From positions 159,371 to 223,370 of IMG/VR virus record IMGVR_UViG_3300033141_006329: 64,000 nucleotides of DNA; one strand, given 5' to 3'. Numbering within the stretch: the first letter of the stretch is position 1; each line of letters opens with the position of its first letter. Of this stretch, positions 17,215 through 64,000 are shown piece by piece. The position numbers were made by a program, and so were the translations under genes. The notes under the pieces are model-generated. The model worked only from the letters and a program-made list of their open reading frames with translations. It was not told the DNA's origin and searched no databases.

Positions 17215-17306
17215 TTTTATTTCCTCCATTTTTAAATTTTTTAAAACCACCTTTATATATCTGTTTTTTAATGAGTTCCTCCTATTCAATCCAAACCCTT
17301 TTATAA

Positions 17307-17321
17307 AGGACAAATTAAAAA
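17307..17321 (+). promoter_or_regulatory. Putative late promoter motif
   Basis: AGGACAAATTAAAAA upstream of the sheath gene. Confidence 0.65.
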
Positions 17322-17383
17322 GACTAGGATAAACGTTTAGGATGATAATCCTATTTAAAACACTCATAAAAAAGGAGATTATA

Positions 17384-24563: not shown

Positions 24564-24575
24564 TTTTCCTTTACC

Positions 24576-24872: not shown

Positions 24873-24880
24873 AGTGCCCC

Positions 24881-26305: not shown

Positions 26306-26613
26306 TACGTTCCTCCCTCATAATAAACTCCCTCTATCAGTTTATCGATCCCTATATGTTTATCAACCGCAGTATCCAATGCTCGAAATAAAAATGCAGG
26401 AATAGTAGAATGTTCATAAGATGCTGACATTTGAGCCTGCCAACCTTTTTGAGTCATAAACAATCTATCAAAAATTAAATCCTTCTCGTAAAAATAATAA
26501 GTGAGAGGCTCTATGCGTTCCAAACGACCTCTACTTTGATGATAATTTTGATTTCCAAAATCATAATCCATGATAATCCCGGTTTCGTTGAAGTTCGCTT
26601 CTATAATATACAT
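26302..26613 (-). CDS. Array family protein, subfamily A
   Basis: LFMTQKGW; RALDTAVDKHIGIDKLIEGVYYEG. Confidence 0.75.
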   Translation of the reverse strand: MYIIEANFNETGIIMDYDFGNQNYHQSRGRLERIEPLTYYFYEKDLIFDRLFMTQKGWQAQMSASYEHSTIPAFLFRALDTAVDKHIGIDKLIEGVYYEGGTY

Positions 26614-26627
26614 CAATATTTTTCTCC

Positions 26628-26948
26628 CTATATCATCCATCTCACTACAGTTACCTTTAAATCATCTCCGGTCCCAGGATACATTATCTTAAAGAAGTTT
26701 AACATTTGTTCCCTGCCGGCAAAGCCATGATCAATACTGTCCCTTCTTTCTACTTCTCCTATAGTGATATGCTTAACAGAAATTATCCTTCTTATAACTG
26801 CCCAGCTGGGATCCTCATTTCCTATCAGGACAGTTCCTAGTTCATAATGACGATGACCTTTTCTTATAACCGTACTTTTCTTTTTATTTTGAACATCATC
26901 TCGCATATGATGTCCTCCTATTAATATTGCTTGTACTGGTGGTTTCAT
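26628..26948 (-). CDS. ASCH/PUA-like domain protein
   Basis: KKKSTVIRKG..DHGF..MYP..VTVVRW. Confidence 0.7.
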   Translation of the reverse strand: MKPPVQAILIGGHHMRDDVQNKKKSTVIRKGHRHYELGTVLIGNEDPSWAVIRRIISVKHITIGEVERRDSIDHGFAGREQMLNFFKIMYPGTGDDLKVTVVRWMI

Positions 26949-27283
26949 TTTTCTTCCTCCTTTCCTATCTCCATAAATTGTGTCAATAATTTATCTATAG
27001 TTATTTCATAATCTTCATCCTTTAAAATCTCATTCTTCAAAATTTGGATCCCACCCTTCTTCTTTGTAAGATCTGAAACAATTTGAAATAATATCTCACC
27101 AAAATTAAAATTACGAACGACAAAGAACAACCAACCTTGATTAACGAAACGAGTTGAAGAAAGATCGATAATATAGTTACCATCTATATTGGGAAATAAT
27201 TCAAACTTACACTTATTTTCATAATATAAAACCCAGCAATCATAATTACCATGTCTCTGATTCTTTATTTTATGCCATTTCAA
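26945..27283 (-). CDS. Array family protein (likely TTG start)
   Basis: LKW N-terminus after GGAGG; C-terminal IDKLLTQFMEIG. Confidence 0.65.
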   Translation of the reverse strand: MKWHKIKNQRHGNYDCWVLYYENKCKFELFPNIDGNYIIDLSSTRFVNQGWLFFVVRNFNFGEILFQIVSDLTKKKGGIQILKNEILKDEDYEITIDKLLTQFMEIGKEEEK

Positions 27284-27284
27284 A

Positions 27285-27440
27285 TTATTCTCCCTCCTTT
27301 TCCCATTCATCCAAAAGATTTGCTGCATCACTACATCCTTCCCAATTATCAAGTCCAGATTGTTCAAGTGCTTGTAACCATAGTCGATCCTTCAATAATT
27401 CATCATATTCTTTTTTGCTTATAGTTATTTGTTCTTCCAT
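27285..27440 (-). CDS. Small protein resembling phage gp5.9-type RecBCD-inhibitor annotations (51 aa, not in ORF track)
   Basis: MEEQITISKKEYDELLKDRLWLQALEQSGLDNWEGCSDA; GGAG RBS. Confidence 0.55.
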   Translation of the reverse strand: MEEQITISKKEYDELLKDRLWLQALEQSGLDNWEGCSDAANLLDEWEKEGE

Positions 27441-27452
27441 GATCTTCTCCTT

Positions 27453-27953
27453 CTAATATCTCAACTTATATAATCTGTTAAATTCATTACTCGGTTTAGC
27501 CCCTTCTATAATATCAATTAGTTCTTTCAATTGTTTAAGATATCTCATATTATAACCTTCCCATATATTTCGTTCCTTAAACTCACCATATCCCCTAACT
27601 ATACTAAAATCGATACCTAAACCAAAACGTATTTCAATGATAGCTGGTAGATTATACTTATTAGAGAAATAGTTTTTCCATCCCTCACAGGGTGTTCCAT
27701 AAAAATTATAATGATTGTTTTTTAATACATAATCAGATAGGTTGATATAAGTAAAACTATATTTATTTTCTGGATCTTTTCCTAATGGACCATATTTATA
27801 ACGTTTTGCCCAACTCTGTAATTTTTCTTCTGTTTTCTTTCTTTTTTCACAGTATAAAAAATGATATTCTGCATCATTGTTGTTTTCAAATGTATTTTTA
27901 CAAATGGGACATTCGTATTCAGTTAAGATAGTTTTTATCTGTTTGATTTTCAT
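27453..27953 (-). CDS. Zn-finger hypothetical protein
   Basis: YECPICKNTF..H..C. Confidence 0.6.
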   Translation of the reverse strand: MKIKQIKTILTEYECPICKNTFENNNDAEYHFLYCEKRKKTEEKLQSWAKRYKYGPLGKDPENKYSFTYINLSDYVLKNNHYNFYGTPCEGWKNYFSNKYNLPAIIEIRFGLGIDFSIVRGYGEFKERNIWEGYNMRYLKQLKELIDIIEGAKPSNEFNRLYKLRY

Positions 27954-27980
27954 TATTCTCCTTATTCAACTTAAAATTGT

Positions 27981-28205
27981 TCACCAAAACTTAAGGTCAT
28001 GTTTTGTTGCACTCACCATAAATAATGTAAATAATGTTATAGGTCCAAACAAACTCAGAAATAAAGATATTTTCATATTTGTCCAATAGTTTCGTTTTGC
28101 AAAGATGGGCCATTCTCCTTGGCACCAAGCAAAGTAAAAGCCGTGAGATAAAACACTACATATTAACCATCCTAAAATTATTACTATTATTATAATCTCT
28201 TTCAT
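27981..28205 (-). CDS. Small two-TM protein (paralog of next)
   Basis: Ends HDLKFW. Confidence 0.65.
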   Translation of the reverse strand: MKEIIIIVIILGWLICSVLSHGFYFAWCQGEWPIFAKRNYWTNMKISLFLSLFGPITLFTLFMVSATKHDLKFW

Positions 28206-28221
28206 AAGTCAACTCCTTTCT

Positions 28222-28443
28222 CTACCAAAATTTTAAACCATACTTAAGCCTGTGCATTAAAAAACTAATTACCAATCCTGGAAATCCAAAACCAAACCCT
28301 ATAATCATAGAACCAATCATATATCTATAATAATCTTTTTCAAAATATCCTGTAGGTTCTCTTATGAAATAGGCAAAGTTAATACCGTAAGAAATCACAC
28401 CACTCACAATCCATATAATAATAATTACCATATTCTCACTCAT
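28222..28443 (-). CDS. Small two-TM protein
   Basis: Ends YGLKFW. Confidence 0.65.
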   Translation of the reverse strand: MSENMVIIIIWIVSGVISYGINFAYFIREPTGYFEKDYYRYMIGSMIIGFGFGFPGLVISFLMHRLKYGLKFW

Positions 28444-28738
28444 ATTTTATACCTCTCTCCCATATCTCCTCTAATAAATTATCAGTTACATATTCATCAA
28501 CAGCATTTGATACAAGATTTAACAATTGTTCACACCGACTTACTAAGTTTTCGTTCTGATACATATCGAAATGCCAACCATTCTTAGTCATAATCAAACC
28601 ACTGAATACTAAGTCGTGAAATCTATAATATATCATCTCACACTCTAATCCAATTGTATTTCCCTCATGTTTATATGTAGCGGGATATTCAGTATTATAA
28701 TATATAGTCATAATATCTTTTTCAAATACAATTTTCAT
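28436..28738 (-). CDS. Array family protein, subfamily A
   Basis: MKIVF; IMTKNGW; NAVDEYVTDNLLEEIWERG. Confidence 0.75.
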   Translation of the reverse strand: MKIVFEKDIMTIYYNTEYPATYKHEGNTIGLECEMIYYRFHDLVFSGLIMTKNGWHFDMYQNENLVSRCEQLLNLVSNAVDEYVTDNLLEEIWERGIKYE

Positions 28739-29064
28739 AGGACCGATCCCCTACTACTAAAACCAACCAATAGTTCATCAAATCCTATATAATCATCCAC
28801 ACCAAAATCTATAGCTTTAAGAAGCTTCCACTGAAATTCTGTTTCCAGAGCGCGTTTATCGCTAAACCACCCCTGATTACGCATTACCAACTTATTGTAA
28901 TACGTAGTTCTAAACCTATACGATAGAAATTCATCTTCAATGCTCAAATAACCTATGTTAACTGAGCTAATGTCTGACCCTATATAATAGTTTATATACA
29001 ATTGATCCTCTTCAAAAACTGCTTGTAAGCTAAATCTATATGTCAGTTTCACTTTTCTTGTCAT
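28735..29064 (-). CDS. Array family protein, subfamily A
   Basis: VMRNQGW; FGVDDYIGFDELLVGFSSRG. Confidence 0.75.
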   Translation of the reverse strand: MTRKVKLTYRFSLQAVFEEDQLYINYYIGSDISSVNIGYLSIEDEFLSYRFRTTYYNKLVMRNQGWFSDKRALETEFQWKLLKAIDFGVDDYIGFDELLVGFSSRGSVL

Positions 29065-29366
29065 ACCTCTAACCCTTTCCCACTAAATCCTATTAACAAA
29101 TCATCCATCTTCAAATAATTATCCATCCCTTTAGGTATTGCTCTAACCGCAACAACCATTATGCTTTCAAACCCTTCTATAATAGAAGGATAGGACCACC
29201 CATCCTTATCCATTATTATTTTTTTAACGCACAGATCTTTATCAAAATCATATGAAATATTTTCATAATCAATACATAGATTGCCCTGATGAGCTGGAGC
29301 ATTGGCGTTGGGAAAATAAATAAATATTTCCTTATCTGTAACTGTTACTTCGACTGGTATATTCAT
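29061..29366 (-). CDS. Array family protein, subfamily A
   Basis: IMDKDGW; GMDNYLKMDDLLIGFSGKG. Confidence 0.75.
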   Translation of the reverse strand: MNIPVEVTVTDKEIFIYFPNANAPAHQGNLCIDYENISYDFDKDLCVKKIIMDKDGWSYPSIIEGFESIMVVAVRAIPKGMDNYLKMDDLLIGFSGKGLEV

Positions 29367-29668
29367 GATAATACTCCTGCTCCTTTCTCACCAAATTTCA
29401 ATAGTAAATCCTCAAATTTTATATATTTATCTATCCCTATTGATAGTGCCCTGTATAATTCATTCATGGCATTATCATACCCACCCTCGACATTAGGTAC
29501 ATTCCAACCATCTTTGGTTATAGTTAAATAATCGAAGCATATATCATCGAATTGATAAGTAGTGTATCCTTCTCCAACCATTCTTCCTTCATGCATTGTT
29601 TTGCTGAAGTCATAAAATAATATCATCTTTTTGTTTTCAAATGTTATCTCCAATCTTTCATATGCCAT
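29363..29668 (-). CDS. Array family protein, subfamily A
   Basis: ITKDGW; GIDKYIKFEDLLLKFGEKG. Confidence 0.75.
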   Translation of the reverse strand: MAYERLEITFENKKMILFYDFSKTMHEGRMVGEGYTTYQFDDICFDYLTITKDGWNVPNVEGGYDNAMNELYRALSIGIDKYIKFEDLLLKFGEKGAGVLS

Positions 29669-29990
29669 AGACTATTCCTCCCGTCCCAATATTAAACAAA
29701 AGATCCTCAAACTTTATGTATACATCAGTATAATAATCCATAGCCGCAAATAGATCATTCATAGCATCATTCTTATTTTTGGAAGTAATCCTATTAACAA
29801 CCCAGCCCTCTTCCCGCAGTGTTAGTGTATTAAAACAGACTCCTGAAAATTCATATGTAAGAAAATTTTCATCTCCAATACATATGGAACCCTCATAACT
29901 CGCATAACATCCACCATTTTTGTAGTAGTTTATCCTTATCGCAAATCCTGAAAAAGTTATATTTAGATCACAATCGTCTCCTGTATCCAT
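29658..29990 (-). CDS. Array family protein, subfamily A
   Basis: LREEGW; TDVYIKFEDLLFNIGTGG. Confidence 0.75.
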   Translation of the reverse strand: MDTGDDCDLNITFSGFAIRINYYKNGGCYASYEGSICIGDENFLTYEFSGVCFNTLTLREEGWVVNRITSKNKNDAMNDLFAAMDYYTDVYIKFEDLLFNIGTGGIVYGI

Positions 29991-30003
29991 CAGATTTTCT
30001 CCT

Positions 30004-30345
30004 TCATATTGTTATTCCTTTCCTGCCGAAATTGTCCATAAATTCTATAATTCCTATATAATCATCTACCCCTGCATTTATCGCTTTGTATAAATAATTC
30101 ATCTCAACTATCTCCGAATCTTGATAGAGTATTTCATTTATGTACCAACCATTCTTATTCATTATTAGTCTATTGAAATATAGTTCATACTCTTTAGGAA
30201 ATGAATAGGTCATATCCTCAACTTTCAAAAACCCCATATATACTGCAGGTATATCGATCATTTTTCCTGTTATACTCGGCATATAAATAGATATTGTCAT
30301 GGCAAGTATATCATCTGTGAATTTCACCTTTGTAAGATACATCAC
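30004..30345 (-). CDS. Array family protein, subfamily A
   Basis: IMNKNGW; AGVDDYIGIIEFMDNFGRKG. Confidence 0.75.
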   Translation of the reverse strand: MMYLTKVKFTDDILAMTISIYMPSITGKMIDIPAVYMGFLKVEDMTYSFPKEYELYFNRLIMNKNGWYINEILYQDSEIVEMNYLYKAINAGVDDYIGIIEFMDNFGRKGITI

Positions 30346-30634
30346 TTATTCCTTTCTCTCCAAACTTCACTAATAAATCAGTTGTAAATACATCAACTCC
30401 TCTCATTGCTTCTCTTCGAAGATTAAGTTCGAATGCGCGTTCAATGCAACCGTTTATATCCACATACCAACTACCATCTTCACGCATTTCTATTCCTTTG
30501 ATACTTGTAAGTCCAAATTTGTAATATATGGGATCGCATTGAGTTAGATATCCTTCAATTGTATATTCATCATCAGAAAAAGATCCATACCCATAGGTCA
30601 CAATCATTTTATCATCCTCAAATCTTATTTTCAT
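30311..30634 (-). CDS. Array family protein, subfamily A
   Basis: MKIRF; MREDGSW; GVDVFTTDLLVKFGEKG. Confidence 0.75.
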   Translation of the reverse strand: MKIRFEDDKMIVTYGYGSFSDDEYTIEGYLTQCDPIYYKFGLTSIKGIEMREDGSWYVDINGCIERAFELNLRREAMRGVDVFTTDLLVKFGEKGISDVSYKGEIHR

Positions 30635-30644
30635 ATTTCATCCC
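30616..30644. repeat. 29-nt exact direct repeat spanning a gene junction (copy 1)
   Basis: CCTCAAATCTTATTTTCATATTTCATCCC, also at 30894-30922. Confidence 0.85.
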
Positions 30645-30912
30645 CTTTATAATATAACATAGTTAACAGATTATCAGTTATGTATTCATCAATTCCGCAA
30701 TTAGCCGATTTACAGAATAAGATAGAATCTTTTTTGGATGGGATTTTATGAGGTTCTGTGATAAAAATCCAACCCCCCTCATTCAAACTTAAAACGGTCT
30801 TAAAATTTTTAAAATCATAATATATATGATCGGAGTCAAAGTTTAGAGAGCCTATATTGTTGATATTAGTAAATTCTATGGTCATCTTTTTTGCCTCAAA
30901 TCTTATTTTCAT
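30631..30912 (-). CDS. Array family protein, subfamily A
   Basis: MKIRF; LNEGGW; GIDEYITDNLLTMLYYKG. Confidence 0.75.
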   Translation of the reverse strand: MKIRFEAKKMTIEFTNINNIGSLNFDSDHIYYDFKNFKTVLSLNEGGWIFITEPHKIPSKKDSILFCKSANCGIDEYITDNLLTMLYYKGDEI

Positions 30913-30922
30913 ATTTCATCCC
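30894..30922. repeat. 29-nt exact direct repeat (copy 2)
   Basis: Same sequence as 30616-30644. Confidence 0.85.
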
Positions 30923-31192
30923 CTTGTAATATATACTATTCAACAAATTATCAGTTACGTAATCGTCTATACCATCAGTTGTTTTTCTTAATACCATATA
31001 TATAATATCATTATAACCACCACTTACATTAGGTGTATCACAACATTTCTTTGTTATTATCAGGGTATCGAAACGCAAATTTTTAAATTTATAAGAAATA
31101 CATTCATCGTTATAATAATCTAAATTACCCATATGTTGATAATATTTATTATATGTCACAATCATCTGATCTTCTGTAAATTTCACCTTCAT
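30896..31192 (-). CDS. Array family protein, subfamily A
   Basis: MKVKF; GIDDYVTDNLLNSIYYKG. Confidence 0.75.
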   Translation of the reverse strand: MKVKFTEDQMIVTYNKYYQHMGNLDYYNDECISYKFKNLRFDTLIITKKCCDTPNVSGGYNDIIYMVLRKTTDGIDDYVTDNLLNSIYYKGMKYENKI

Positions 31193-31488
31193 ATTTCATC
31201 TCCTATTTGATACATACCTTCCAGAATATTATCTGTTACATATTTATCAACAGCTACTGACATTGCCTTATATAATTTACACATGCTATCATTATCATCA
31301 GAGTTATCTTTATAATCATGTGCAACCCAACCATTCTCGGTCATCTCTAAACTTTGAAAAATTAACTCATGTGTAAAATCATATATTAACCATTCACGCA
31401 ATAATCCAGCAAGTGTAATTGTATCATCGCCGCCACTATTACAGGTTATAAACATCTTTTTTGGTTTAAATTCTACTACCATATCCAT
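31189..31488 (-). CDS. Array family protein, subfamily A
   Basis: EMTENGW; AVDKYVTDNILEGMYQIG. Confidence 0.75.
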   Translation of the reverse strand: MDMVVEFKPKKMFITCNSGGDDTITLAGLLREWLIYDFTHELIFQSLEMTENGWVAHDYKDNSDDNDSMCKLYKAMSVAVDKYVTDNILEGMYQIGDEI

Positions 31489-31817
31489 CCACCTATTCCT
31501 CCCTCAAATAACACATTCAATAATTCATCTGTATTGATACTAATCCAAATATTATGGAATGCTGTTTTCATAATAATTTTTATCATATCTCCAAGTTCAT
31601 TATCTACAAAAAACTCATCCAATATCTTAACTAAAACTTCTACAAAATGGGGGGAAGTATTGGAAAAGGATATGTTATAATGAAAAACACTTTTGAGATA
31701 TATAGTAGTAAACCTATGATTCCAAAATATCTGCAAATTTCTATTTTTACCCAATCCCATATAATAACAAAGTTTGCTATTCTCAGTTTTTCTAATCCTG
31801 CGTCCTGCCGGTTTCAT
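31476..31817 (-). CDS. Array family protein
   Basis: C-terminal TDELLNVLFEGG. Confidence 0.7.
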   Translation of the reverse strand: MKPAGRRIRKTENSKLCYYMGLGKNRNLQIFWNHRFTTIYLKSVFHYNISFSNTSPHFVEVLVKILDEFFVDNELGDMIKIIMKTAFHNIWISINTDELLNVLFEGGIGGWIW

Positions 31818-32140
31818 ATCTTGACTCCTTTCTCATACATCTCTCCCACAAAAGAATCGATATCTACCGATACAGTAGCATGATTATTCCTAAGTAATAC
31901 ATCTTTAAAATAACTAAAGCCTTTCTTATCAATAGCATTCATCATAACTTCCTTAAGTATATTTCTAAAGGACTTTTCGCCCAATTCGAACGTAATAACG
32001 GCAAAGTCTGACTCCGCCCAATAATAATTACATGCTAAATGCCACCTATCTGAATAATATGAATGAATCACATCATTCCCCTCCAAACATTTATCAACAT
32101 CCATACAATAATCAATTGCGTTACTGCGAACCCATTCCAT
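31814..32140 (-). CDS. Array family protein (pair with 32121)
   Basis: MEW..CMDVDKCLEG; IDSFVGEMYEKG. Confidence 0.7.
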   Translation of the reverse strand: MEWVRSNAIDYCMDVDKCLEGNDVIHSYYSDRWHLACNYYWAESDFAVITFELGEKSFRNILKEVMMNAIDKKGFSYFKDVLLRNNHATVSVDIDSFVGEMYEKGVKI

Positions 32141-32462
32141 ATTCTCCTCCTTTCTCATACATTGTTTCAATTAATAAACTAATATCTATGATCAGCTCTG
32201 CGCCAATATTCCTATTGATCGAATCCTTAAAATCTTCAAATCCTTTTCTATCTACCGCATCTATCATAAATTCCTTAAGTGTATCTCTAAACGATTCTCC
32301 CACATGATTAAATATAATACAACAGTATTCAAAATGCAACATATAATTAGTAGAAAGTATCCACCTATCATCGGAACAATAAGAATAAATTATACAATCA
32401 CCCTCAACACACATATCCACATCTTTACAAAATCCTACAGAAGCTTCGTGATACCATCTCAT
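32121..32462 (-). CDS. Array family protein
   Basis: MRW..CKDVDMCVEG; ISLLIETMYEKGG. Confidence 0.7.
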   Translation of the reverse strand: MRWYHEASVGFCKDVDMCVEGDCIIYSYCSDDRWILSTNYMLHFEYCCIIFNHVGESFRDTLKEFMIDAVDRKGFEDFKDSINRNIGAELIIDISLLIETMYEKGGEYGMGSQ

Positions 32463-32752
32463 ATATTTGCTCCTTTCTCAAACATCTCAAGTAATAAATC
32501 ATCATTAAAGCCGAATACAGAATAATTAAATACACTGATAGATTCCTCAGTAAACTCGAAATTCTTAACAATATTTTTCAAATCTTTTTCAAGTTCTTTC
32601 ACCCGGCTGTTATTAACCAAAAATGCTATATAGCCCCAATCGTCTCCTAACTTCGTCCTTCCAATTCGTACCGTTACCCAACCATAATGAATATTTGGAA
32701 TATAACTCTCTGTACTATATACATTCAGAAACTTATCATCTTCAGGTATCAT
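32459..32752 (-). CDS. Array family protein
   Basis: C-terminal NDDLLLEMFEKG. Confidence 0.7.
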   Translation of the reverse strand: MIPEDDKFLNVYSTESYIPNIHYGWVTVRIGRTKLGDDWGYIAFLVNNSRVKELEKDLKNIVKNFEFTEESISVFNYSVFGFNDDLLLEMFEKGANI

Positions 32753-33119
32753 AACTAGTCCCTTCCTTATTAAAAATACGCATCAAATCATCAGTATCTA
32801 ATATTATAGTACCGATTTCCGGAATAAATTCACTTAGTAAACCACCCTTATAATATTTAGTCTCCATTATTTCAGTTAAGGATTTTATTTGTCCCATACT
32901 GATATTATGCATATAATAAAATGTAATATAATTTTGAATGTAATGACAATTTGAACTAGTATCCTTAAGCTGAAAGCTCACAGTATTTGATAAACTCAGT
33001 CCCACATAAAGAGATTTTGCCTTATCTGGAATATCTGCGCTATAAGATTTTACCCACCAATATTTAGTCGTGTCGACCTTCTTATATACCCACTCACCTA
33101 ATTTTTTTATGTGTTTCAT
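32742..33119 (-). CDS. Array family protein
   Basis: C-terminal TDDLMRIFNKEG. Confidence 0.7.
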   Translation of the reverse strand: MKHIKKLGEWVYKKVDTTKYWWVKSYSADIPDKAKSLYVGLSLSNTVSFQLKDTSSNCHYIQNYITFYYMHNISMGQIKSLTEIMETKYYKGGLLSEFIPEIGTIILDTDDLMRIFNKEGTSYDT

Positions 33120-33481
33120 ATCATAACTCCTTCAATACAAATAATATTCAAATATTCTTCGGTTTCAAACGATGTTGTTATGGGGTTGTAAATATTTTCA
33201 CCTGTAATAATTAATTTTTTTATATCCTGCTCTTTGTCATACTTCTCATCTAAAATAGTTTTTATATATTTGTGTAATCTTTCATCTGCATTTTGAAATT
33301 CTAATGTGTATAGAGACGACATGGCTGAGGGGCTAGTTTTTGTAACTGAAAGCAATACATCATTCACGCGATAATAATAATCTAATCTTATTGTCAAATC
33401 ACTATGATAACTAGTCTCGGTGCCATCTAAATATATATTTCCTGTCAATCCGCTTCTTTTCCAACTTAGCATATAATACAT
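33116..33481 (-). CDS. Array family protein (paralog of 62711)
   Basis: TGNIYL..LDYY; TEEYLNIICIEG. Confidence 0.7.
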   Translation of the reverse strand: MYYMLSWKRSGLTGNIYLDGTETSYHSDLTIRLDYYYRVNDVLLSVTKTSPSAMSSLYTLEFQNADERLHKYIKTILDEKYDKEQDIKKLIITGENIYNPITTSFETEEYLNIICIEGVMI

Positions 33482-33801
33482 CCTCCCGTTAACATAATGT
33501 TCAAGGTGTCTTTTTCCCTTAAGCGATAACTGTTCTTGTCCGGGTCTATATTATCTAATTTATTATACAATTCTTCCATACTCAAATCACTAAGAAGATC
33601 ACAAGCAATATCAACTAGTTTGCGCTTGTTTCTTCCCATATCGCACTCGAATATAATACCACTACCACGTTCTACCTCTCTTCTGAACATTATTATCTGT
33701 ATATATGTCTTCACGAAATACCTTATAATCAACTCAAACTCACCAGACCGATATGAATAGATATTTCCCTTGCATTTGAATTGATCTCTATTTATCCTCA
33801 T
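33466..33801 (-). CDS. Array family protein (pair with 33788)
   Basis: C-terminal KDTLNIMLTGG. Confidence 0.7.
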   Translation of the reverse strand: MRINRDQFKCKGNIYSYRSGEFELIIRYFVKTYIQIIMFRREVERGSGIIFECDMGRNKRKLVDIACDLLSDLSMEELYNKLDNIDPDKNSYRLREKDTLNIMLTGGCIIC

Positions 33802-34126
33802 ATCCTACACCCTCCCCTATCATAATTTCTAATATATCAACCTCCTTAAATGTTGGGCTATATTTTTCTGGATCTACTTTTTCAAAATTCTCATACAATA
33901 TATTCATAGGTGTTTCACTAATTATCTCACACATAATATCGGTAACTTTATCGATGCAATTTTCCAGATAATACTTAAAGCGAATGCCAAACCCTATCTC
34001 CTCATTGTCCTTAAAAATTAATACCTGGGGCTGATCAAATCGTATAACAACGACAAACTTACCGTGTTGATACCTTCGATAATTACTATTGCGAGAAACC
34101 TCAAATAAATCCTTATAATTTTTCAT
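33788..34126 (-). CDS. Array family protein
   Basis: C-terminal VDILEIMIGEG. Confidence 0.7.
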   Translation of the reverse strand: MKNYKDLFEVSRNSNYRRYQHGKFVVVIRFDQPQVLIFKDNEEIGFGIRFKYYLENCIDKVTDIMCEIISETPMNILYENFEKVDPEKYSPTFKEVDILEIMIGEGVGYEDK

Positions 34127-34484
34127 AACTCTCTCCTGAATAATAAAAACAGTTAATGATCCCACATAGATTAATATACATACTTTCCATTGTACAATCT
34201 TTATAATGCATCTTATTCAAATGCCAATATAATCGTTCAAAACCAAATGTTGATAATAGAGAGGAAATCATATACAGATTAAAATCTAATATACCCGGCA
34301 ACCTAAAGTTTAAATTTATTGCATTATTGCTATTATTAAAAATACGTAACAGAATCCGATCAATAGGATCATGTATTATGTAATATATAGGGCTAATTCC
34401 CAACTTCTCTGTTTTATGATATGTAAAACCAAAATAATCCTTGCTCACCTGCCAATTGATGTTATATCTAACTATATCTTTCAT
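34113..34484 (-). CDS. Array family protein
   Basis: INW N-terminus; LCGIINCFYYSG. Confidence 0.65.
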   Translation of the reverse strand: MKDIVRYNINWQVSKDYFGFTYHKTEKLGISPIYYIIHDPIDRILLRIFNNSNNAINLNFRLPGILDFNLYMISSLLSTFGFERLYWHLNKMHYKDCTMESMYINLCGIINCFYYSGESYEKL

Positions 34485-34836
34485 CCATACCTACCCCCTT
34501 AAATATCCAATCCTCATCATGTTCAATATAATAAACATCTTCCATAATATCCCCAATATGCGGATATGCTCCTAACATACCTGCCTCAATACAATTCCTA
34601 ATAATACTAAATAAGTAGATCAGATCAATATGATTTAATCCTTTAACAGTGCATATTACTTGCATGTTACTAGACCCCTCTACATTCGGAGCTATTAAAA
34701 CCACATATTTATAGTTACCATATAATTTTATGTATACAGGATAATCATACTTATTTTCAAAGTTACTCTCTGTAGTCCATACATCATCATCTCTAAACCT
34801 CCATTCATATCCTAAACAAACTATATATCTATTCAT
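34468..34836 (-). CDS. Array family protein (divergent tag)
   Basis: YEW N-terminus; HDEDWIFKG. Confidence 0.6.
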   Translation of the reverse strand: MNRYIVCLGYEWRFRDDDVWTTESNFENKYDYPVYIKLYGNYKYVVLIAPNVEGSSNMQVICTVKGLNHIDLIYLFSIIRNCIEAGMLGAYPHIGDIMEDVYYIEHDEDWIFKGVGMDERYS

Positions 34837-35165
34837 ATTTCCACCCCCTCATACATGAAATCGATCTCATAATATGTCATATGTAAAGCCGACATAAAAT
34901 GATCAAACTGTTCAATGCCATAATGTAACAAATCTAGTATACAATTAATAAAAATCCGAGCCTCGTTAGTATCACAATTCATAGTCAATACTGAATAAGG
35001 ATGAGAAAAGTTAATAGCACACCCGCCAGTACATTTGAATATCTCGATGGATTTATTTTCAATATTCATCTTATAATATGTCTCATTATCGATATCATAT
35101 CCTGAACTCCAGCTAGAATTTCTCTTCATATCCCACGCCTCCATGCATGAAATCAATTTCCTCAT
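34833..35165 (-). CDS. Array family protein (pair with 35113)
   Basis: FSHPYSVLTMNC; YEIDFMYEG. Confidence 0.65.
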   Translation of the reverse strand: MRKLISCMEAWDMKRNSSWSSGYDIDNETYYKMNIENKSIEIFKCTGGCAINFSHPYSVLTMNCDTNEARIFINCILDLLHYGIEQFDHFMSALHMTYYEIDFMYEGVEI

Positions 35166-35415
35166 GATGTATATATAATTTTGTCATAAAATACTCAATA
35201 TTCATGTCCAATAATTTCCTAACAATATCAATGAAAATTACACCATCTAATATATTACAACTCATTGTTAAACACTGGTAAGGGTGAGAATAAACAACAA
35301 CACAACCACCAAGATAACATTCAAATAGGTCTAATCTCTTTTTACCACCAAATGTATAATATAAATTACTATCAGTGTCATGATCACTCATCCAACCATT
35401 CGGATAATTTTTCAT
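35113..35415 (-). CDS. Array family protein, first gene of the array
   Basis: YSHPYQCLTMSC; EEIDFMHGG; start MKNYP after AAAGGAG. Confidence 0.65.
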   Translation of the reverse strand: MKNYPNGWMSDHDTDSNLYYTFGGKKRLDLFECYLGGCVVVYSHPYQCLTMSCNILDGVIFIDIVRKLLDMNIEYFMTKLYIHHEEIDFMHGGVGYEEKF

Positions 35416-35444
35416 TTTTATATCTCCTTTCAAAAATTAACAAT

Positions 35445-36467: not shown

Positions 36468-36505
36468 CCTCAATAAAAAATTTAAATAAAAACTCATTTC
36501 TCTTA

Positions 36506-36528
36506 TCATAATTTAATATATATAATAG
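36506..36528 (-). promoter_or_regulatory. Motif class 2, no downstream gene
   Basis: CTATTATATATATTAAATTATGA. Confidence 0.5.
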
Positions 36529-36537
36529 AATTCAATA

Positions 36538-58518: not shown

Positions 58519-58851
58519 TTATATCCTTCCACCTTTTAACCAACAATTATTCAATATCAGATCCACATCAATCGAAATATTGGCATTATCATTACTAAAA
58601 ATAAGCTTTTCAAATCGATCAAAATTAAGCATAACCTTATCTATAATATTTGCAAAAATTTTCAACATTTTATAATCATAACAACCTTCAAATCTCAAAA
58701 ATTTATATGGTTTGCCTAATGTTTGACAGCGAGTGCTTATACATAGTGTGTGATGAAAATTATAGAATATATTGATGTATATACACTCCTTAATTGGACC
58801 AAATCTTTTCAATACATTATGCGGATATATTGTCCAACCGTTCTCACACAT
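58519..58851 (-). CDS. Array family protein
   Basis: C-terminal ISIDVDLILNNCWLKGG. Confidence 0.65.
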   Translation of the reverse strand: MCENGWTIYPHNVLKRFGPIKECIYINIFYNFHHTLCISTRCQTLGKPYKFLRFEGCYDYKMLKIFANIIDKVMLNFDRFEKLIFSNDNANISIDVDLILNNCWLKGGRI

Positions 58852-59086
58852 TTTCAAAAAACACCGAGTTAAATGGCACAGTAGGAAATTCCTCAAGATA
58901 TATATTCGTATGCCAATTATGTACATCAATCATATTAACCGTATATACACCATTGTAAACCAAATGGTCCTTGGCTTTATCCTGATCATATTTATAACCA
59001 TTTTCGGGATATTTGAAAACAATCTTATCCCCCTTTTTCACTTCTAATTCTTTCACGATTATCTCCTTTATAACCTTAAAATTCAA
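58844..59086 (-). CDS. Hypothetical (SH3-like beta protein)
   Basis: KGDKIVF..GVYTV..YLEE..FNSVFF. Confidence 0.65.
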   Translation of the reverse strand: MNFKVIKEIIVKELEVKKGDKIVFKYPENGYKYDQDKAKDHLVYNGVYTVNMIDVHNWHTNIYLEEFPTVPFNSVFFENV

Positions 59087-59366
59087 ATCTTTGTTGCTTA
59101 AATTTCTTAAGCTCTTCCTGATTTTTCTTTATGCCTTTTATTATTTCTTTTATCTCATCGAGCTTGCGATATGCATGTTGTTTCATCTTTTCAGGATTTT
59201 CAAATTCTTCGGATTCATATACCTTCTGTCTAATACCCTTATCATTAGGAATTATGCAGGTCGGGAATCCACCATAGCTCTTTTCAGTCTCAATCTTATA
59301 TTTGCAGTAACCATGATCCGTCAAGGCATAATCAATAATGATATCAATATTAAAACTTTCAATCAT
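59076..59366 (-). CDS. Hypothetical protein
   Basis: Coupled ORF. Confidence 0.6.
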   Translation of the reverse strand: MIESFNIDIIIDYALTDHGYCKYKIETEKSYGGFPTCIIPNDKGIRQKVYESEEFENPEKMKQHAYRKLDEIKEIIKGIKKNQEELKKFKQQRFEF

Positions 59367-59402
59367 ATATTTATCCTCTAATCAATATTTTAATTATTTA
59401 CA

Positions 59403-59612
59403 TTATTTATAATCCTCATTATTAACAAATACCTCCTCATTATTAGTAGGTTCATCCCAAGGACAATTTTCACAATCGTCCCCAGTTTCCCAATTTTTAT
59501 CATTGATTTTGTTTGCTTTATCATTCCTCTGTATTAGATATATCTCATACAAACCAAAACAAAATAATCCTACAACTATTAAAAGTATAATCCAGCCTAA
59601 TATATTTGGCAT
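59403..59612 (-). CDS. Single-TM small protein
   Basis: N-terminal hydrophobic helix. Confidence 0.6.
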   Translation of the reverse strand: MPNILGWIILLIVVGLFCFGLYEIYLIQRNDKANKINDKNWETGDDCENCPWDEPTNNEEVFVNNEDYK

Positions 59613-59647
59613 ATTATATTCTCCTTTGTTAAAATTAATTCACCGTT

Positions 59648-59665
59648 AGGACATACTAAAGAAAA
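59648..59665 (+). promoter_or_regulatory. Variant late motif
   Basis: AGGACATACTAAAGAAAA, same as 21308-21325. Confidence 0.5.
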
Positions 59666-59675
59666 GGACCCAACT

Positions 59676-59840
59676 ATGAATGATGAATTAGTTATGAAAA
59701 TAAAAATGGCGAAATCTGAGATAGCCAGACTCAAAAGGGATCTGGCATATCACAAATGTAAAATAAAACTCACTGTAAAAGAACTTGAGGAAATTAAGGA
59801 AGAACTCCGACAACTTACGTCTGATCATTATGTGTATTGA
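59676..59840 (+). CDS. Small coiled-coil protein (54 aa, not in ORF track)
   Basis: MNDELVMKIKMAKSEIARLKR..; behind the variant motif; opposite strand to its neighbours. Confidence 0.5.
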   Translation: MNDELVMKIKMAKSEIARLKRDLAYHKCKIKLTVKELEEIKEELRQLTSDHYVY

Positions 59841-60009
59841 AATATTTCTCTGTTATTTTATCAAGACCAGCATTAGCAACCTCGATAACTTTCCTATTAT
59901 ATTTTAACTCTTTTGCTAACTTAAATACTTCCTTATGATATTCTATCATTTCTTTATCACAATGTTGTGATGTGTACTCTGCTTGTGCTATTACCTCATC
60001 GATTGTCAT
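59815..60009 (-). CDS. Hypothetical protein
   Basis: AAAGGAG RBS. Confidence 0.6.
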   Translation of the reverse strand: MTIDEVIAQAEYTSQHCDKEMIEYHKEVFKLAKELKYNRKVIEVANAGLDKITEKYFNTHNDQT

Positions 60010-60048
60010 AATATTTCTCCTTTCTAATTTATAAAAAAATTTAGGTTG

Positions 60049-60073
60049 AGAGGGGAGTTTGCAGCTCCCCTCT
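60049..60073 (-). terminator. Hairpin terminator
   Basis: AGAGGGGAG / CTCCCCTCT stem just after the stop at 60078. Confidence 0.6.
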
Positions 60074-60077
60074 AAAA

Positions 60078-60284
60078 TTAAATACGAAAAAATCCTGAAT
60101 ATTTAGCATCCTCCCAAATATGGATTTCTGCCCCAACTTTCTCTTCAAGCTTTTCTTTTAATAAGGTTTGAAGATGAAAGGGAGTTTTTGCAACAGGGGC
60201 TAACTTTTCAATAATTTCAACTGGCCCATCGGTAGGGTATCCTACTACAGTGTTTTTACATTGCGTTAATATCTCGTATAACAT
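60078..60284 (-). CDS. Hypothetical protein
   Basis: AGGAG RBS, behind a class-2 motif. Confidence 0.6.
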   Translation of the reverse strand: MLYEILTQCKNTVVGYPTDGPVEIIEKLAPVAKTPFHLQTLLKEKLEEKVGAEIHIWEDAKYSGFFRI

Positions 60285-60327
60285 TTTTTTAAATCTCCTA
60301 TAAAAGATTAATAAAAATTATCTCTGT

Positions 60328-60350
60328 TCATAATTTAATATATATAATAG
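60328..60350 (-). promoter_or_regulatory. Motif class 2
   Basis: CTATTATATATATTAAATTATGA. Confidence 0.5.
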
Positions 60351-60356
60351 AAATCA

Positions 60357-60689
60357 TTAATATACAAATCCCTTCTCATTGAAATCATCAAACAAATCAT
60401 AATCATTGATCGGTTTTATATAACTATTATTTTCAAAAATATCAAGTATATTCAGAGAGTCTTTAGAAAGTTCTTCTGTTAAATAATCTGTAATGATTAA
60501 GAGTTGTTTTTCGGTTATACCATCACAACACATAATATTTCTACTCGCATGAAACAAATATCCACTCCTCAACAAATTCAAATATATGCCTCTAAACAAT
60601 CTCCAATACGACATTCGATACGAAGTGATTACGATTGTCCAATCATCATTCCTCTGTACTCTTCTTTCCATATTATCCCTCTTCCTCAT
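60357..60689 (-). CDS. Array family protein
   Basis: C-terminal YDLFDDFNEKG. Confidence 0.65.
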   Translation of the reverse strand: MRKRDNMERRVQRNDDWTIVITSYRMSYWRLFRGIYLNLLRSGYLFHASRNIMCCDGITEKQLLIITDYLTEELSKDSLNILDIFENNSYIKPINDYDLFDDFNEKGFVY

Positions 60690-61063
60690 TCCAGACTAAC
60701 CCCTAAATTGAAAATATTATCAAACAACTCCTCGAAATGAATATCAACTGCCCTGTGTCCTGGCCCTATAATAAGAGAAATATCATCAACCCTTAAATAT
60801 TTTTCGTCTAACACGCCTTGTAGATAATCTTTGAATTTGGAAGACAATTCAACATTGTGGCTATTAAATACTAATGTGTATGAATCCTTTGAATTAAACC
60901 AGTTGCTGTCCACCGTATTAACAACAACACCGAACTCAAAAGATGTTCCCGTTACATTATCCCAAGGAGTATATTCCCACAGATTGATTTGCCTATTACA
61001 TATTGGATCGTTAAGTACTAACATGTTCACAATTTGTTTCCTTTTTGTTTTTACCCAATTCAT
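60686..61063 (-). CDS. Array family protein
   Basis: MNW; FEELFDNIFNLG. Confidence 0.7.
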   Translation of the reverse strand: MNWVKTKRKQIVNMLVLNDPICNRQINLWEYTPWDNVTGTSFEFGVVVNTVDSNWFNSKDSYTLVFNSHNVELSSKFKDYLQGVLDEKYLRVDDISLIIGPGHRAVDIHFEELFDNIFNLGVSLE

Positions 61064-61064
61064 G

Positions 61065-61445
61065 CTATACCTCCTTTCCTTTCCCAAATAAATTCTCTAT
61101 AATACTATCTGTAATGCCCTCAAAACTCTTTTCAATATGAATTTTCAAGTTATCAGGTGTAGCATCGGAGGGATCTGTAAATAATTTGTTGCACTCTTCG
61201 ATTATTATAGCTAAAAAACAAATGAATATCTCCCTGTTATATTTGTTTGGATCAAACTCATGATTAGAAAGTTGTATCATGGTCGGTTTGAATTGACCAC
61301 ATTCATCATGCGCCCAAATTATAAAACCCGAACTAACACCATGTATCAATGCATTTAAAAATGGGAGCTTACAACTCCAACTAGAATAACCATCTCTGTC
61401 AATTCTTTCCCAATTCCAATATAAAAATCGTTCAAGTTCAATCAT
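61065..61445 (-). CDS. Array family protein
   Basis: YWNW; TDSIIENLFGKG. Confidence 0.7.
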   Translation of the reverse strand: MIELERFLYWNWERIDRDGYSSWSCKLPFLNALIHGVSSGFIIWAHDECGQFKPTMIQLSNHEFDPNKYNREIFICFLAIIIEECNKLFTDPSDATPDNLKIHIEKSFEGITDSIIENLFGKGKEV

Positions 61446-61455
61446 AATTATGCCC

Positions 61456-61794
61456 TCAAATTGTTGTTCCAAAGTCTCCCAATAATATTTTGTCTGCTAT
61501 CTCATGACAATTATAGTTAAAATCATGACCAGGATATAATACTTTTCGAATTAAACCTTTCCTTTTATGCCTCTCGTTTAAAATGACCTTTAACTCTTCT
61601 GTAAATTTATCTATATGAGCAATATGGATAAAATACAAACCATCAAAAGATAGTTGTGCGTTTTTGTGTATATAAACTGTTACGCCATGATTATATTTAT
61701 CTTTTTGTATCACAATATCACCATAAGGTATATTTCCTTCATAACGACTACGAAAAGAGTTACTTTCGTCAAACCATTTAATATCTTCAATCAT
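61456..61794 (-). CDS. Array family protein
   Basis: IKW; HEIADKILLG. Confidence 0.65.
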   Translation of the reverse strand: MIEDIKWFDESNSFRSRYEGNIPYGDIVIQKDKYNHGVTVYIHKNAQLSFDGLYFIHIAHIDKFTEELKVILNERHKRKGLIRKVLYPGHDFNYNCHEIADKILLGDFGTTI

Positions 61795-62119
61795 AATCGT
61801 GTCCCTTGAAATTAAATATATCAAACATGTGTTCAAATGTCATATCATATCTAATATAATCATGTGTAAAAATTTTTGATATATTACCACCATACTCATA
61901 ATACACATCGAATAATCCTATAATATCAATGATTAATAATTTTTTAGAATTACTAATATTAAGCCGAATTGCCCGACGAGAATAAAATTCATTATAAAAT
62001 TCTATCTCGATCACATGTCTACAATTCCACACATCCAATTTACAATTTCCAACTCTGGTTTTATGACAAAACTTACCTATACCCAAATCAATTTTTTCCC
62101 ATCGTAATTCATCTCTCAT
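61787..62119 (-). CDS. Array family protein
   Basis: LRW; FEHMFDIFNFKG. Confidence 0.7.
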   Translation of the reverse strand: MRDELRWEKIDLGIGKFCHKTRVGNCKLDVWNCRHVIEIEFYNEFYSRRAIRLNISNSKKLLIIDIIGLFDVYYEYGGNISKIFTHDYIRYDMTFEHMFDIFNFKGHDYD

Positions 62120-62442
62120 AATCCAACTCCTTCACACCATATAGTATTTAAAATTTCGTCAGGTTCAAATTTATGATAACCTTGATGTATTATCTCTAAT
62201 ATGTTTGGGTGTTTCTCAACCTGTTGACTCAATATATTCCTAAGTTCGTGTATAAAAGTTTCAGGAATATTTTTTACACCCAAATCAAAATGCAGCATAG
62301 GATAAACACGACCAAATTTATAATCATCGGGTTCATATAAAACTACTTCCGTATCTCGTTTGAATATCCTCAAATATAAACCTCTTGCAATCGGTAATTT
62401 GGCATAATGGACATTAAACAAAACTGTCCATTTCAATTTCAT
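62116..62442 (-). CDS. Array family protein
   Basis: LKW; PDEILNTIWCEG. Confidence 0.7.
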   Translation of the reverse strand: MKLKWTVLFNVHYAKLPIARGLYLRIFKRDTEVVLYEPDDYKFGRVYPMLHFDLGVKNIPETFIHELRNILSQQVEKHPNILEIIHQGYHKFEPDEILNTIWCEGVGL

Positions 62443-62714
62443 GGTGGTGCGCCCCCTTCCTCAAATAAATCGAAAATCATATCATCAGGAAACCAATATT
62501 CAAATAATGCAACATTTAACTCGAATGAAACATGATCGTGTGTATGTCTTTCTGATGCTCTAAATATCCAATTCCCCCTAACTTCTGAAATTATATCCGA
62601 GTATTTCTTTTTGAATCCACAAATACTCAATGGGAGACATCGTACTCTACTCTCCAAAAATAAAAAACCACCAGCCAAATCCCCAACTATTAACAACTTT
62701 CGATAATTAATCAC
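62439..62714 (-). CDS. Array family protein
   Basis: C-terminal DDMIFDLFEEGG. Confidence 0.65.
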   Translation of the reverse strand: MINYRKLLIVGDLAGGFLFLESRVRCLPLSICGFKKKYSDIISEVRGNWIFRASERHTHDHVSFELNVALFEYWFPDDMIFDLFEEGGAPP

Positions 62715-63073
62715 AATATAATTCCTCCCCCAATCATAATTGCTAAATATTCCTCATCTGATAAAAGATAAATTAGCTTTACATCATGACATCCTGCGAA
62801 TGGTAGTAATGTCGCAATATTGCCCGTTTTTTCATAATTATCTTCTATCAATACTTTCAAGTAATCCCTAAATTTGATACTGGTTTTAGAAAATGTGATG
62901 TATGTAAACCCTGTAACATCTGCTCCGAAATGCCCACATTTCCATAGTTTTAGTGTAGTGTCCTCAAGTTGACCATAAAAATCAAGTTCAATTACATAAT
63001 CATTATCGTCGTAGAATGTAAGATATACAGATCCTGTCCTCTCATTGAAATAATCTTGCCTAATGTGCATCAT
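62711..63073 (-). CDS. Array family protein (paralog of 33116)
   Basis: TGSVYL..LDFY; DEEYLAIMIGGG. Confidence 0.7.
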   Translation of the reverse strand: MMHIRQDYFNERTGSVYLTFYDDNDYVIELDFYGQLEDTTLKLWKCGHFGADVTGFTYITFSKTSIKFRDYLKVLIEDNYEKTGNIATLLPFAGCHDVKLIYLLSDEEYLAIMIGGGIIL

Positions 63074-63444
63074 ATTATAACTCCCCCATATCCAATAACA
63101 TTTAAATATTCTTCATCTTCTAAATTCAAAGGATCTTCGGGTAAGGCAGGAATCATATAATCTATACAAGTCCCCTTCCTATATTCCTTATTTATTATCC
63201 TCACAAGTTCAAGGACAAGATTGGTCCCATAATCACCAACGAACCCATATATCTCTATACAACCCGGTATATCATTATCATCTTTAGTATTATATACAAA
63301 TATCATTATGTCGCCAGCTTCTGAATGCCATGTTACATCTATCTCGCAATCGTGTCTAGGTACCTTTCCTAAATACGTATATCCAGGTATCACAAAAAAT
63401 CTTTTCTCCCATTTTATAGGGAGAATTTTATCGTTATATCTCAA
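63070..63444 (-). CDS. Array family protein
   Basis: IKW; DEEYLNVIGYGG. Confidence 0.7.
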   Translation of the reverse strand: MRYNDKILPIKWEKRFFVIPGYTYLGKVPRHDCEIDVTWHSEAGDIMIFVYNTKDDNDIPGCIEIYGFVGDYGTNLVLELVRIINKEYRKGTCIDYMIPALPEDPLNLEDEEYLNVIGYGGVII

Positions 63445-63731
63445 ATTTCTTCTCCTCTATAATAGAAAATATCAAACAGCTTATTCATACTAAGTAGATA
63501 TTCAAGTGCTTTACCATACAACCCGTATATAAAAAGTTTTTTATCGTAGGGTTGTATATATTCTAATATCGTATGAATATTTACCCTATGCTTAAAAATC
63601 CCAATATCATCAAAATAGGAATAACTAATATTAACCATACCCCCAGGCTCTATATCTGCACTAACAACCGTAGCATTATGTTTCATAATATTGATCCTCC
63701 TTCTAAAAGAATATCTAAAGGTTCGACGCAA
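63441..63731 (-). CDS. Array family protein
   Basis: C-terminal MNKLFDIFYYRG. Confidence 0.65.
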   Translation of the reverse strand: MRRTFRYSFRRRINIMKHNATVVSADIEPGGMVNISYSYFDDIGIFKHRVNIHTILEYIQPYDKKLFIYGLYGKALEYLLSMNKLFDIFYYRGEEI

Positions 63732-64000
63732 CCATATAAATAATTCTTATCAATAACTAATTCCTTACCTTTATCATACAAATCATCAATTATTTTTGCA
63801 AGTTCATGAAATTGTTTCTTATCAATATTAAAACTATAGAATATATGACCATACCCTGTAGTTGCATCACTATCTAAAGTTCGTATTATGTAAAGGCTAG
63901 ATAATAAAGGATTAAAACTTATGCATACCCTATGACTACCATAATGTCGTATGTATTTAATATCGCCCCACCAATTAGGTTTAAATTCCCAATGACTCAT
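63683..64000 (-). CDS. Array family protein
   Basis: SHW; PLDILLEGG; ATG at the window edge. Confidence 0.6.
   Translation of the reverse strand: MSHWEFKPNWWGDIKYIRHYGSHRVCISFNPLLSSLYIIRTLDSDATTGYGHIFYSFNIDKKQFHELAKIIDDLYDKGKELVIDKNYLYGCVEPLDILLEGGSIL

Follow-up and report, generated by a model that had tools for sequence, protein, structure and literature searches.

Arrays of small, diverged paralogous proteins sharing a C-terminal tag in a huge phage from marine sediment

Tandem, terminally or regionally clustered arrays of fast-turnover, non-enzymatic paralogs, the copy number of which varies between close relatives, are formed by the MGF families of African swine fever virus (ASFV) and by the host-range genes of poxviruses, while the hyperplastic regions of T4-type phages hold small orphan open reading frames (ORFs) that are shuffled by promoter/stem-loop cassettes and vary among related phages. 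Translational coupling, through a Shine-Dalgarno (SD) site inside the upstream ORF and an ATGA overlap, is a general feature of bacterial and phage operons. In Bacillus phage G, a lineage-specific expansion of a zinc ribbon to ~35 copies was called 'unprecedented' in a 2021 survey of jumbo phages (PMC7824862). Here we describe a 64,000-nucleotide stretch of viral DNA (hereafter the window; bases 159,371-223,370 of the single 223,370-bp contig stored as IMG/VR record IMGVR_UViG_3300033141_006329), in which small minus-strand ORFs with a common C-terminal tag are packed into arrays. Positions are those of the window unless marked as genome positions, and single ORFs are named by their first coordinate.

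As with the zinc ribbon of phage G, one small domain has been multiplied within a single jumbo-phage lineage, and its function can only be guessed (PMC7824862). However, the domain found here could be assigned to no known fold or family, conserves neither metal-binding nor other polar residues, and reaches ~46 copies by strict profile linking, or ~90 with subfamilies, in three arrays of overlapping genes. The ASFV and poxvirus arrays differ in that they belong to another virus realm, have no sequence relation to the present one, encode much larger proteins and lack the bacterial-style translational coupling that is probably used here. Like the T4-type hyperplastic regions, these are accessory regions in which small orphan ORFs abound and vary from one related phage to another, but the ORFs are mutual paralogs and not unrelated. 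Since the genes overlap, there are no intergenic cassettes of the T4 type; a promoter scan detected 43 promoter-like sites versus 45.7 expected, which corresponds to chance, and terminator-like sites numbered 5 versus 1.8 expected. The explanation that we favor, with a confidence somewhat above even, is that the arrays hold one old, strongly diverged superfamily of small (~80-140 residues), soluble proteins, which would have spread by tandem duplication into at least three co-oriented, translationally coupled arrays of a huge marine-sediment phage. The proteins would fold into an N-terminal antiparallel β-meander followed by helices, would end in a tag with two layers of information, and would serve as a non-enzymatic, diversified repertoire of binders directed against the host, for take-over or anti-defence, with one target per copy.

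We then investigated how far the ORFs of different arrays are related. The preliminary description of this DNA had proposed that ORF 62711-63073 aligns along its length with ORF 33116-33481 (minus strand) of another array, and 112 residues of the two indeed align at 24% identity (E 3e-7). Profile links between the arrays extend well beyond this pair. When each array ORF was used as a jackhmmer query against a set made up of all ORFs of 50 residues or more and of shuffled and reversed decoys, a single component of 46 ORFs was obtained, which spans all three arrays, includes 58519, 62116, 62711 and 63683, and contains no decoy; the converged hidden Markov model (HMM) of this core superfamily A also recovered 46 ORFs. 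At E 1e-3, ORFs 60686, 61456 and 63070 were added to the component, and at least 4-7 of the array 2 ORFs in the window are profile-linked to the other arrays. The cross-array links remained after deletion of the last 22 residues, and the homology between arrays is therefore not confined to the tag. BLASTP clusters further support paralogy among the array ORFs.

The protein of ORF 62711-63073 is also present on a 306,137-bp metagenome contig of the Joint Genome Institute (Ga0366833_1000001 of dataset 3300033141; hereafter the parent contig), which is 100% identical to the final 11.3 kb of the window and then runs on. The stored genome ends exactly on the ATG of ORF 63683-64000 (window 63998-64000), inside array 2, and the parent contig continues; the right edge of the window was therefore made by an artificial cut, which falls on a gene boundary, resembles an automatic trim and does not mark the end of the genome. 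We read 232 kb of the 306-kb parent contig, including the stretch beyond the right edge (L005 1-9073), so that all family counts are lower bounds. Within these 232 kb, ~92 ORFs are profile-linked or tagged, amounting to roughly a quarter of the listed ORFs and ~16% of the DNA. The copies are adjacent and co-oriented, in three minus-strand arrays of 11-35 members with mostly 4-nt overlaps. Array 1 (23974-35433) contains ~27 family ORFs from core superfamily A, subfamily B and subfamily C (the latter at 34833-35433), together with a few unrelated small ORFs, and array 2 has 11-12 members inside the window. Array 3 lies to the left of the window (genome 142957-159610), with 35 members in 16.6 kb; the partial ORF at the left edge, suspected earlier of opening another locus, does head this array, since positions 1-240 (minus strand) hold the 5′ part of its first gene, a core member of 137 residues (genome 159197-159610). 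Array 2 likewise runs off the right edge as proposed, and continues on the parent contig with a tagged 128-residue ORF, a TnpB-like ORF and ~17 further small tagged ORFs; 15 members were counted beyond the edge and 4 elsewhere in the genome. The family is thus larger than the forty or so members of the preliminary description, but it is confined mainly to the three arrays, with the tag at chance level outside them, and is not genome-wide.

The family comprises several groups. Core superfamily A accounts for 46 ORFs, distributed over the three arrays, two singletons (genome 19556 and 41763) and one ORF beyond the right edge. Subfamily B consists of 12 ORFs in window 26000-31488, and subfamily C of 7, occurring as stand-alone copies and as the C-terminal domain of three leucine-rich-repeat (LRR) proteins. 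The 5 ORFs of subfamily D all lie beyond the right edge, as do three of the 4 ORFs of subfamily E, the fourth being 62439; two further pairs were found, one in array 3 and one beyond the right edge. In hhalign comparisons, B, D and many singletons joined core A across the tag only, with P values of 1e-4 to 1e-2, versus 0.14-0.48 for eight control proteins, one of which reached 0.02.

In the last part of the window (58519-64000), 12 ORFs with the same tag had been claimed; all twelve exist, all on the minus strand, and the tag is far above chance. Their coordinates follow the gene calls of the parent contig, which refine four starts. ORF 58519-58851 (110 residues, although the longest ORF reaches 58929) is an isolated member of core superfamily A with the tag ...DLILNNCWLKGGRI; this separate copy overlaps, at its 3′ end, the start of the gene for a CCA-adding enzyme. 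The other eleven, from 60357 to 64000, form an unbroken chain with mostly 4-nt ATGA overlaps. The 3′-most gene of this chain, 60357-60671, is linked to the family by its tag (...YDLFDDFNEKGFVY), to which its hhalign match with core A is restricted (P 0.007); its ortholog on a 7-kb contig of a related phage (L004) shows 78% identity and a ratio of nonsynonymous to synonymous substitution rates (dN/dS) of 0.36. ORF 60686-61063 was reached by jackhmmer from 62711 at the 1e-3 threshold, also with the tag trimmed (ortholog dN/dS 0.30), whereas 61065-61445 is a jackhmmer singleton with a tag-only link (...SIIENLFGKGKEV; ortholog dN/dS 0.14). The tag of 61456-61794 is degenerate (...KILLGDFGTTI), and this ORF is linked to 62711 with the tag trimmed, its trimmed body matching core A by hhalign at P 6e-4. 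It is followed by 61787-62119, with a tag-only link (...HMFDIFNFKGHDYD) and no counterpart in the relative's array, and by 62116-62442, placed in core A by profile linkage (ortholog dN/dS 0.26). ORF 62439-62714 belongs to the short subfamily E (EYWFPxDMIFDLF...), and 62711-63073, the protein that we modelled, to core A. ORF 63070-63444 (tag ...EEYLNVIGYGGVII; ortholog dN/dS 0.33) was again found by jackhmmer from 62711, and 63441-63686, of 81 residues, has a tag-only link (...NKLFDIFYYRGEEI) and is missing in the relative. Finally, 63683-64000 is a core A member, the ATG of which forms the final three bases of the window. For 60357, 61065, 61787 and 63441, no link to the other arrays apart from the tag could be detected. 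Tryptophan near the N-terminus, also pointed out earlier, is borne out as a tendency, with W within the first 20 residues in 53 of 88 family ORFs versus 36 of 231 other genes.

The tag consists of a strand, h-x-h-D-h-D (h, hydrophobic), then D-x-L-L-x-x-h-h-(E/K/G)-x-G, and then 2-4 residues; in its shorter form, as shared by the twelve ORFs, an acidic cap precedes h-h-x-x-h-h-x-x-G and the 2-4 terminal residues. A strict regular expression for it matched 58 of 90 array genes versus 9 expected from shuffled proteins; in the remaining genome it matched 17 of 231 genes versus 12 expected, which is chance level. An HMM of the tag matched 37 ORFs, with a distance of 0-5 residues to the C-terminus in every case, and left all 1,474 decoys unmatched. 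Its Gly was kept in 51 of 54 family genes irrespective of the distance to the next gene, while non-family genes have Gly at that place at near-chance frequency (41% with tight spacing, ~30% when distant). The hydrophobic half is the best-conserved part of the protein, and the structural models suggest that it is a real protein helix, comprising the last strand and an amphipathic helix of the fold; its D-x-L-L-x-x-h-h part has no explanation at the nucleotide level. Endings of the D-x-L-F-x-x-F-Y type bear what we take to be a resemblance to C-terminal clamp-binding or PIP-like peptides.

The preliminary description had treated the tag as a shared feature of the ORFs. This holds for the hydrophobic helix as a feature of the protein, but the second half (E/K/G-G-x-x-L/I-stop) is an in-frame reading of the next gene's SD site, spacer and ATGA overlap. 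The codons of the E/K/G-G part form a purine run of the GAGGA, AAAGGAG or GGAGG type, an SD-like 4-mer lies inside 68 of 70 tags, and the Gly codon starts 10 or 11 nt ahead of the next ATG in 31 of 70 cases, with a modal distance of 11 nt. The final residue is mostly L or I, encoded by TTA or ATA before TGA, and it is this last codon that supplies the A of the ATGA overlap; the commonest intergene gap is -4. The distance from Gly to ATG was unchanged where the stop of the ORF itself lies 18-27 nt further on (genome 151804, 152132, 190266, 190846 and 193158); the fixed unit is therefore the helix, purine run, spacer and next start, and not the distance to the ORF's own stop. Furthermore, the Gly codon of the tag was GGA or GGG in 58 of 70 cases versus 49% genome-wide (p 5e-9), the Glu codon was GAG in 30 of 47 versus 30% genome-wide (p 3e-6), and synonymous divergence (dS) from the relative amounted to 0.46 in the body but only 0.28 in the tag. 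The skewed use of synonymous codons confirms selection on an RNA signal, and the G/E/K part of the tag is, as judged from these sequences, the translated SD site of the overlapping downstream gene. The second half thus doubles as an SD/ATGA signal, and selection would therefore keep it at both the protein and the nucleotide level; the ATGA-packed genes are probably polycistronic, translationally coupled units. As in translational coupling generally, an SD-like purine run lies 7-10 nt before the ATG, stop and start overlap by 4 nt, and codon choice is bent to the signal. The difference is that the signal is here fused to a conserved protein helix and copied ~70 times, and it therefore becomes visible as a conserved peptide tag.

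We also investigated the distribution of the family. When 1.84 billion representative proteins were searched with a profile built from 42 members, 44 hits were obtained, ~33 of them the phage's own proteins. Six other hits could be traced (P0002, P0035, P0038, P0043, P0044 and the query), and each belongs either to the parent contig or to a contig of a single Logan run; the untraced non-self hits are 61-83% identical to the phage's proteins. A word-indexed search with the subfamily B profile gave the same lineage restriction, and a single family protein searched against viral contigs found no relatives. Among the representatives searched, only this phage and one relative, found in a sample of marine sediment, appear to carry the family. 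A search of sequencing runs for the window found one DNA run, a marine sediment metagenome, in which 9% of the sampled words were present, and detected the stretch in none of the RNA runs. The stored contig (G+C ~32%) codes for a tail sheath with at most ~25% identity to the phages in the collection, a 1,914-residue protein, an NAD-dependent DNA ligase, the CCA-adding enzyme and a TnpB/IS605 ORF, and megablast of a large gene near the arrays gave no match among phage records. The DNA therefore belongs to a huge tailed phage, of at least 306 kb, that has no close relatives in culture.

For eight pairs of orthologs shared by the window and the 7-kb contig of the relative, dN/dS was 0.14-0.66 (0.41 for the body and 0.33 for the tag); these are therefore real genes under purifying, fairly relaxed selection. 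The relative lacks 61787, 63441, 63683, the 128-residue ORF and the TnpB ORF, and its array 1 lacks three B copies. Within the genome, the nearest paralogs are at most 46% identical and have saturated dS, and the expansion is therefore old, with copies kept individually. One paralog pair has a dN/dS of 0.80, but since synonymous sites are saturated, paralog dN/dS is uninformative for positive selection.

To obtain a view of the fold, we built an AlphaFold2 model of 62711-63073 (model A) on a 42-sequence alignment, with a mean predicted local distance difference test (pLDDT) score of 77.5 and a predicted template modelling (TM) score of 0.66. In the predicted fold, five antiparallel strands come first and are followed by a helix of 18 residues, two shorter helices, one short strand and finally the tag helix (residues 106-114). 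Model B (28436-28738; pLDDT 73) consists of six strands and, at the C-terminus, a long helix, the end of which is formed by the tag. The tag has the lowest model confidence, at 61-70 in A and 40-61 in B, depending on the block. The same order of elements in A and B fits one diverged superfamily, although it is no proof of it. The alignment has no invariant column, with only M1, F61 and G117 nearly invariant, and it contains no conserved catalytic or metal site and no conserved polar residues.

Searches for known relatives gave uniformly weak results. Pfam and PHROG searches of the family found no match, and no Pfam family was shared by more than one of the 42 members at E values up to 5. The best E value in PDB sequence searches was 0.08, Foldseek searches of both models against PDB and of model A against BFVD stayed above E 0.01 throughout, and VIA-align against a wide PDB set reached at best Z 5.2 with model A and Z 5.1 with model B, values that fall within the noise range of the tool. 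The ESM Atlas, searched with model A, returned only unnamed clusters at TM ~0.5, its look-up by features was empty, and its own model was poor (pLDDT 0.39). The weak structural neighbours, which are leads only, include several immunity proteins, one anti-CRISPR and a WGR domain. Of these, the WGR domain ('WGI' motif, Z 4.7 to the PARP WGR) was dropped, since the Pfam signal was absent, and a match of the B profile to the immunity protein TsiV3 (E 0.3) was set aside as noise, since neither fold search with model B listed it. No homology to anti-CRISPR or known anti-defence proteins was found, as AcrF1 reached only Z 4.4 and PHROG and Pfam were empty. The family would thus seem to be a previously undescribed small protein.

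Several neighbouring genes and elements accompany the arrays. Three LRR proteins on the minus strand end in subfamily C: that at 16399-17367 through its C-terminal ~115 residues, with a tag-like end, a second at 20271-21269, with the ending ...FDFESELFKGSSI, and a third at genome 157906-158880. LRR proteins are unusual in phages, and one of the three adjoins the tail sheath gene, likewise in the relative (L007). Two TnpB/IS605 OrfB-type ORFs with a Cas12f1-like TNB domain were found, at 6370-7620 (minus strand) and at L005 7578-8654. The latter sits inside array 2 and is missing from the related phage together with three neighbouring family genes, which therefore marks a recent insertion or deletion. 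An AT-rich motif of ~20 nt, similar to TATATATATTAAATTATGAA and a candidate phage-specific promoter, occurs at five intergenic sites, always in minus-strand orientation (window ~60330-60350, ~3460-3480 and ~36505-36530; genome ~27000 and ~44150); one copy lies directly 3′ of the last gene of array 2. Three paralogous zinc-finger/DUF7487 proteins (14435-15628, plus strand; 19165-20274 and 22241-23251, minus strand) have a restriction-endonuclease-like C-terminal part (MTES_1575-like) and are possibly homing endonucleases dotted around array 1. In the relative, array 1 contains an ORF (L007 1477-1671) matching T7 Gp5.9, of the RecBCD inhibitor family. The small minus-strand ORF 58844-59056, between the 58519 copy and array 2, carries the Pfam assignment Phage_T4_Y07B in the precomputed annotation of the parent contig, which suggests a slight link to accessory genes of the T4-like type. 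Large fibre-like or structural proteins ending in ...(I/V)DGG(T/V)L (genome 61837-64992, 61597-61800, 126613-127170 and 67658-68380) have a different GG-containing C-terminal motif, which lies outside the family tag by regular expression.

We regard as shown the paralogy, the three arrays and their coupling signal, the two layers of the tag, purifying selection, the gain and loss of copies between the two phages and the confinement to a single lineage. For the function of the family, our best guess, at moderate-to-low confidence, is that the proteins act as non-enzymatic binders in host take-over or counter-defence. We infer this because only core positions are conserved, in a family that is diversified and variable between relatives, because the arrays, in company with accessory genes, occupy the strand that carries the non-structural genes, because one subfamily is fused to LRR modules, and because the relative has the T7 Gp5.9-like ORF inside its array. 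Several points weigh against the favored explanation as a whole. The function is assigned by analogy, the searches having found no homolog of known function, and the fold searches stayed at noise level (best Z 5.2, Foldseek E above 0.01). The divergence and saturated dS of the paralogs (identity at most 46%) give no sign of a recent burst. Since B, D and the singletons join core A through the tag only, a single origin of all ~90 ORFs is plausible but not proven, and for ~20 tag-only ORFs the detected homology ends at the tag.

The main rival takes the tag as an autonomous C-terminal signal for docking, targeting, packaging or degradation, which would bring ~90 otherwise unrelated cargoes to one partner, for instance for co-packaging in the capsid and injection. 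The strictly C-terminal position of the tag speaks for it, as do its presence at the ends of the three LRR proteins, its low model confidence (61-70 in A, 40-61 in B) and the fact that it is the sole element that hhalign aligns between A and B, D and many singletons. However, in model A the tag helix follows a strand of the same domain, the cross-array homology reaches well past the tag, A and B share their element order, half of the tag is explained by the ribosome-binding site of the next gene, and the motif is at chance level outside the arrays. We therefore regard such a signal as unlikely. Its more specific form, in which the tag would be a common address label delivering ~90 proteins and the LRR fusions to a single phage or host hub, for instance as an injected effector cocktail, is somewhat less likely still; if true, this would amount to a phage effector-library system of a new kind, with genes hard-wired for coupled translation by the same sequence.

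Next in standing, and a little more doubtful, is the possibility that the arrays are poly-immunity loci encoding immunity-type inhibitors of a range of toxins or defence effectors. As in the immunity arrays of polymorphic toxins (SUKH/Imm, CdiI, TriTu), small, diverged α/β proteins stand in diversified tandem arrays, and weak structural neighbours point in this direction: TriTu (Z 5.0), CdiI (Z 4.9 and 3.9), DddI (Z 4.2) and AcrF1 (Z 4.4) appear at noise level, a TriTu-containing Atlas cluster at TM 0.38-0.42, and chains of type VI secretion system immunity proteins in the B profile search at E 0.3. The T7 Gp5.9-like ORF within array 1 of the relative can also be read in this way. However, these neighbours do not rise above the level of unrelated models (typical best Z 7-8), and there is no significant sequence or fold match; no Imm or SUKH family of Pfam was matched consistently across the 42 members. 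The arrays, moreover, lie in a phage, and no toxin domain was found in the subset of neighbours scanned, namely ten small ORFs in or beside the arrays, the CCA-adding enzyme, the NAD ligase, and the LRR and DUF7487 proteins. Least probable of all is that the shared ending is a mere by-product of SD and ATGA signals in packed genes, the tag-only ORFs of array 2 being unrelated orphans, for although the strong synonymous codon skew, the fixed distance to the next start and the four array 2 ORFs linked by the tag alone agree with it, the SD site leaves the D-x-L-L-x-x-h-h part unexplained, Gly occurs in 93-100% of family genes versus 41% of equally tight non-family genes, all seven family genes with a distant next gene (for two or more of which the distance is an artefact of overlooked ORFs) keep it, and the tag-only ORFs outscore controls against profile A.

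A diverged superfamily in coupled arrays, with a tag of two layers and a role as host-directed binders, remains the explanation that we prefer, and it bears on how such regions are to be read. The phage genome was trimmed inside an array, and gene counts made on the trimmed record understate the family. Caution is also advisable where packed genes share a conserved end 'tag', since it may largely be the translated ribosome-binding site of the next gene. For the phage itself, old copies that are individually kept under purifying selection, and are gained and lost between relatives, form the pattern expected of a repertoire directed against variable host targets, and for screens of binding or anti-defence activity the arrays provide a single small scaffold in ~90 natural variants.

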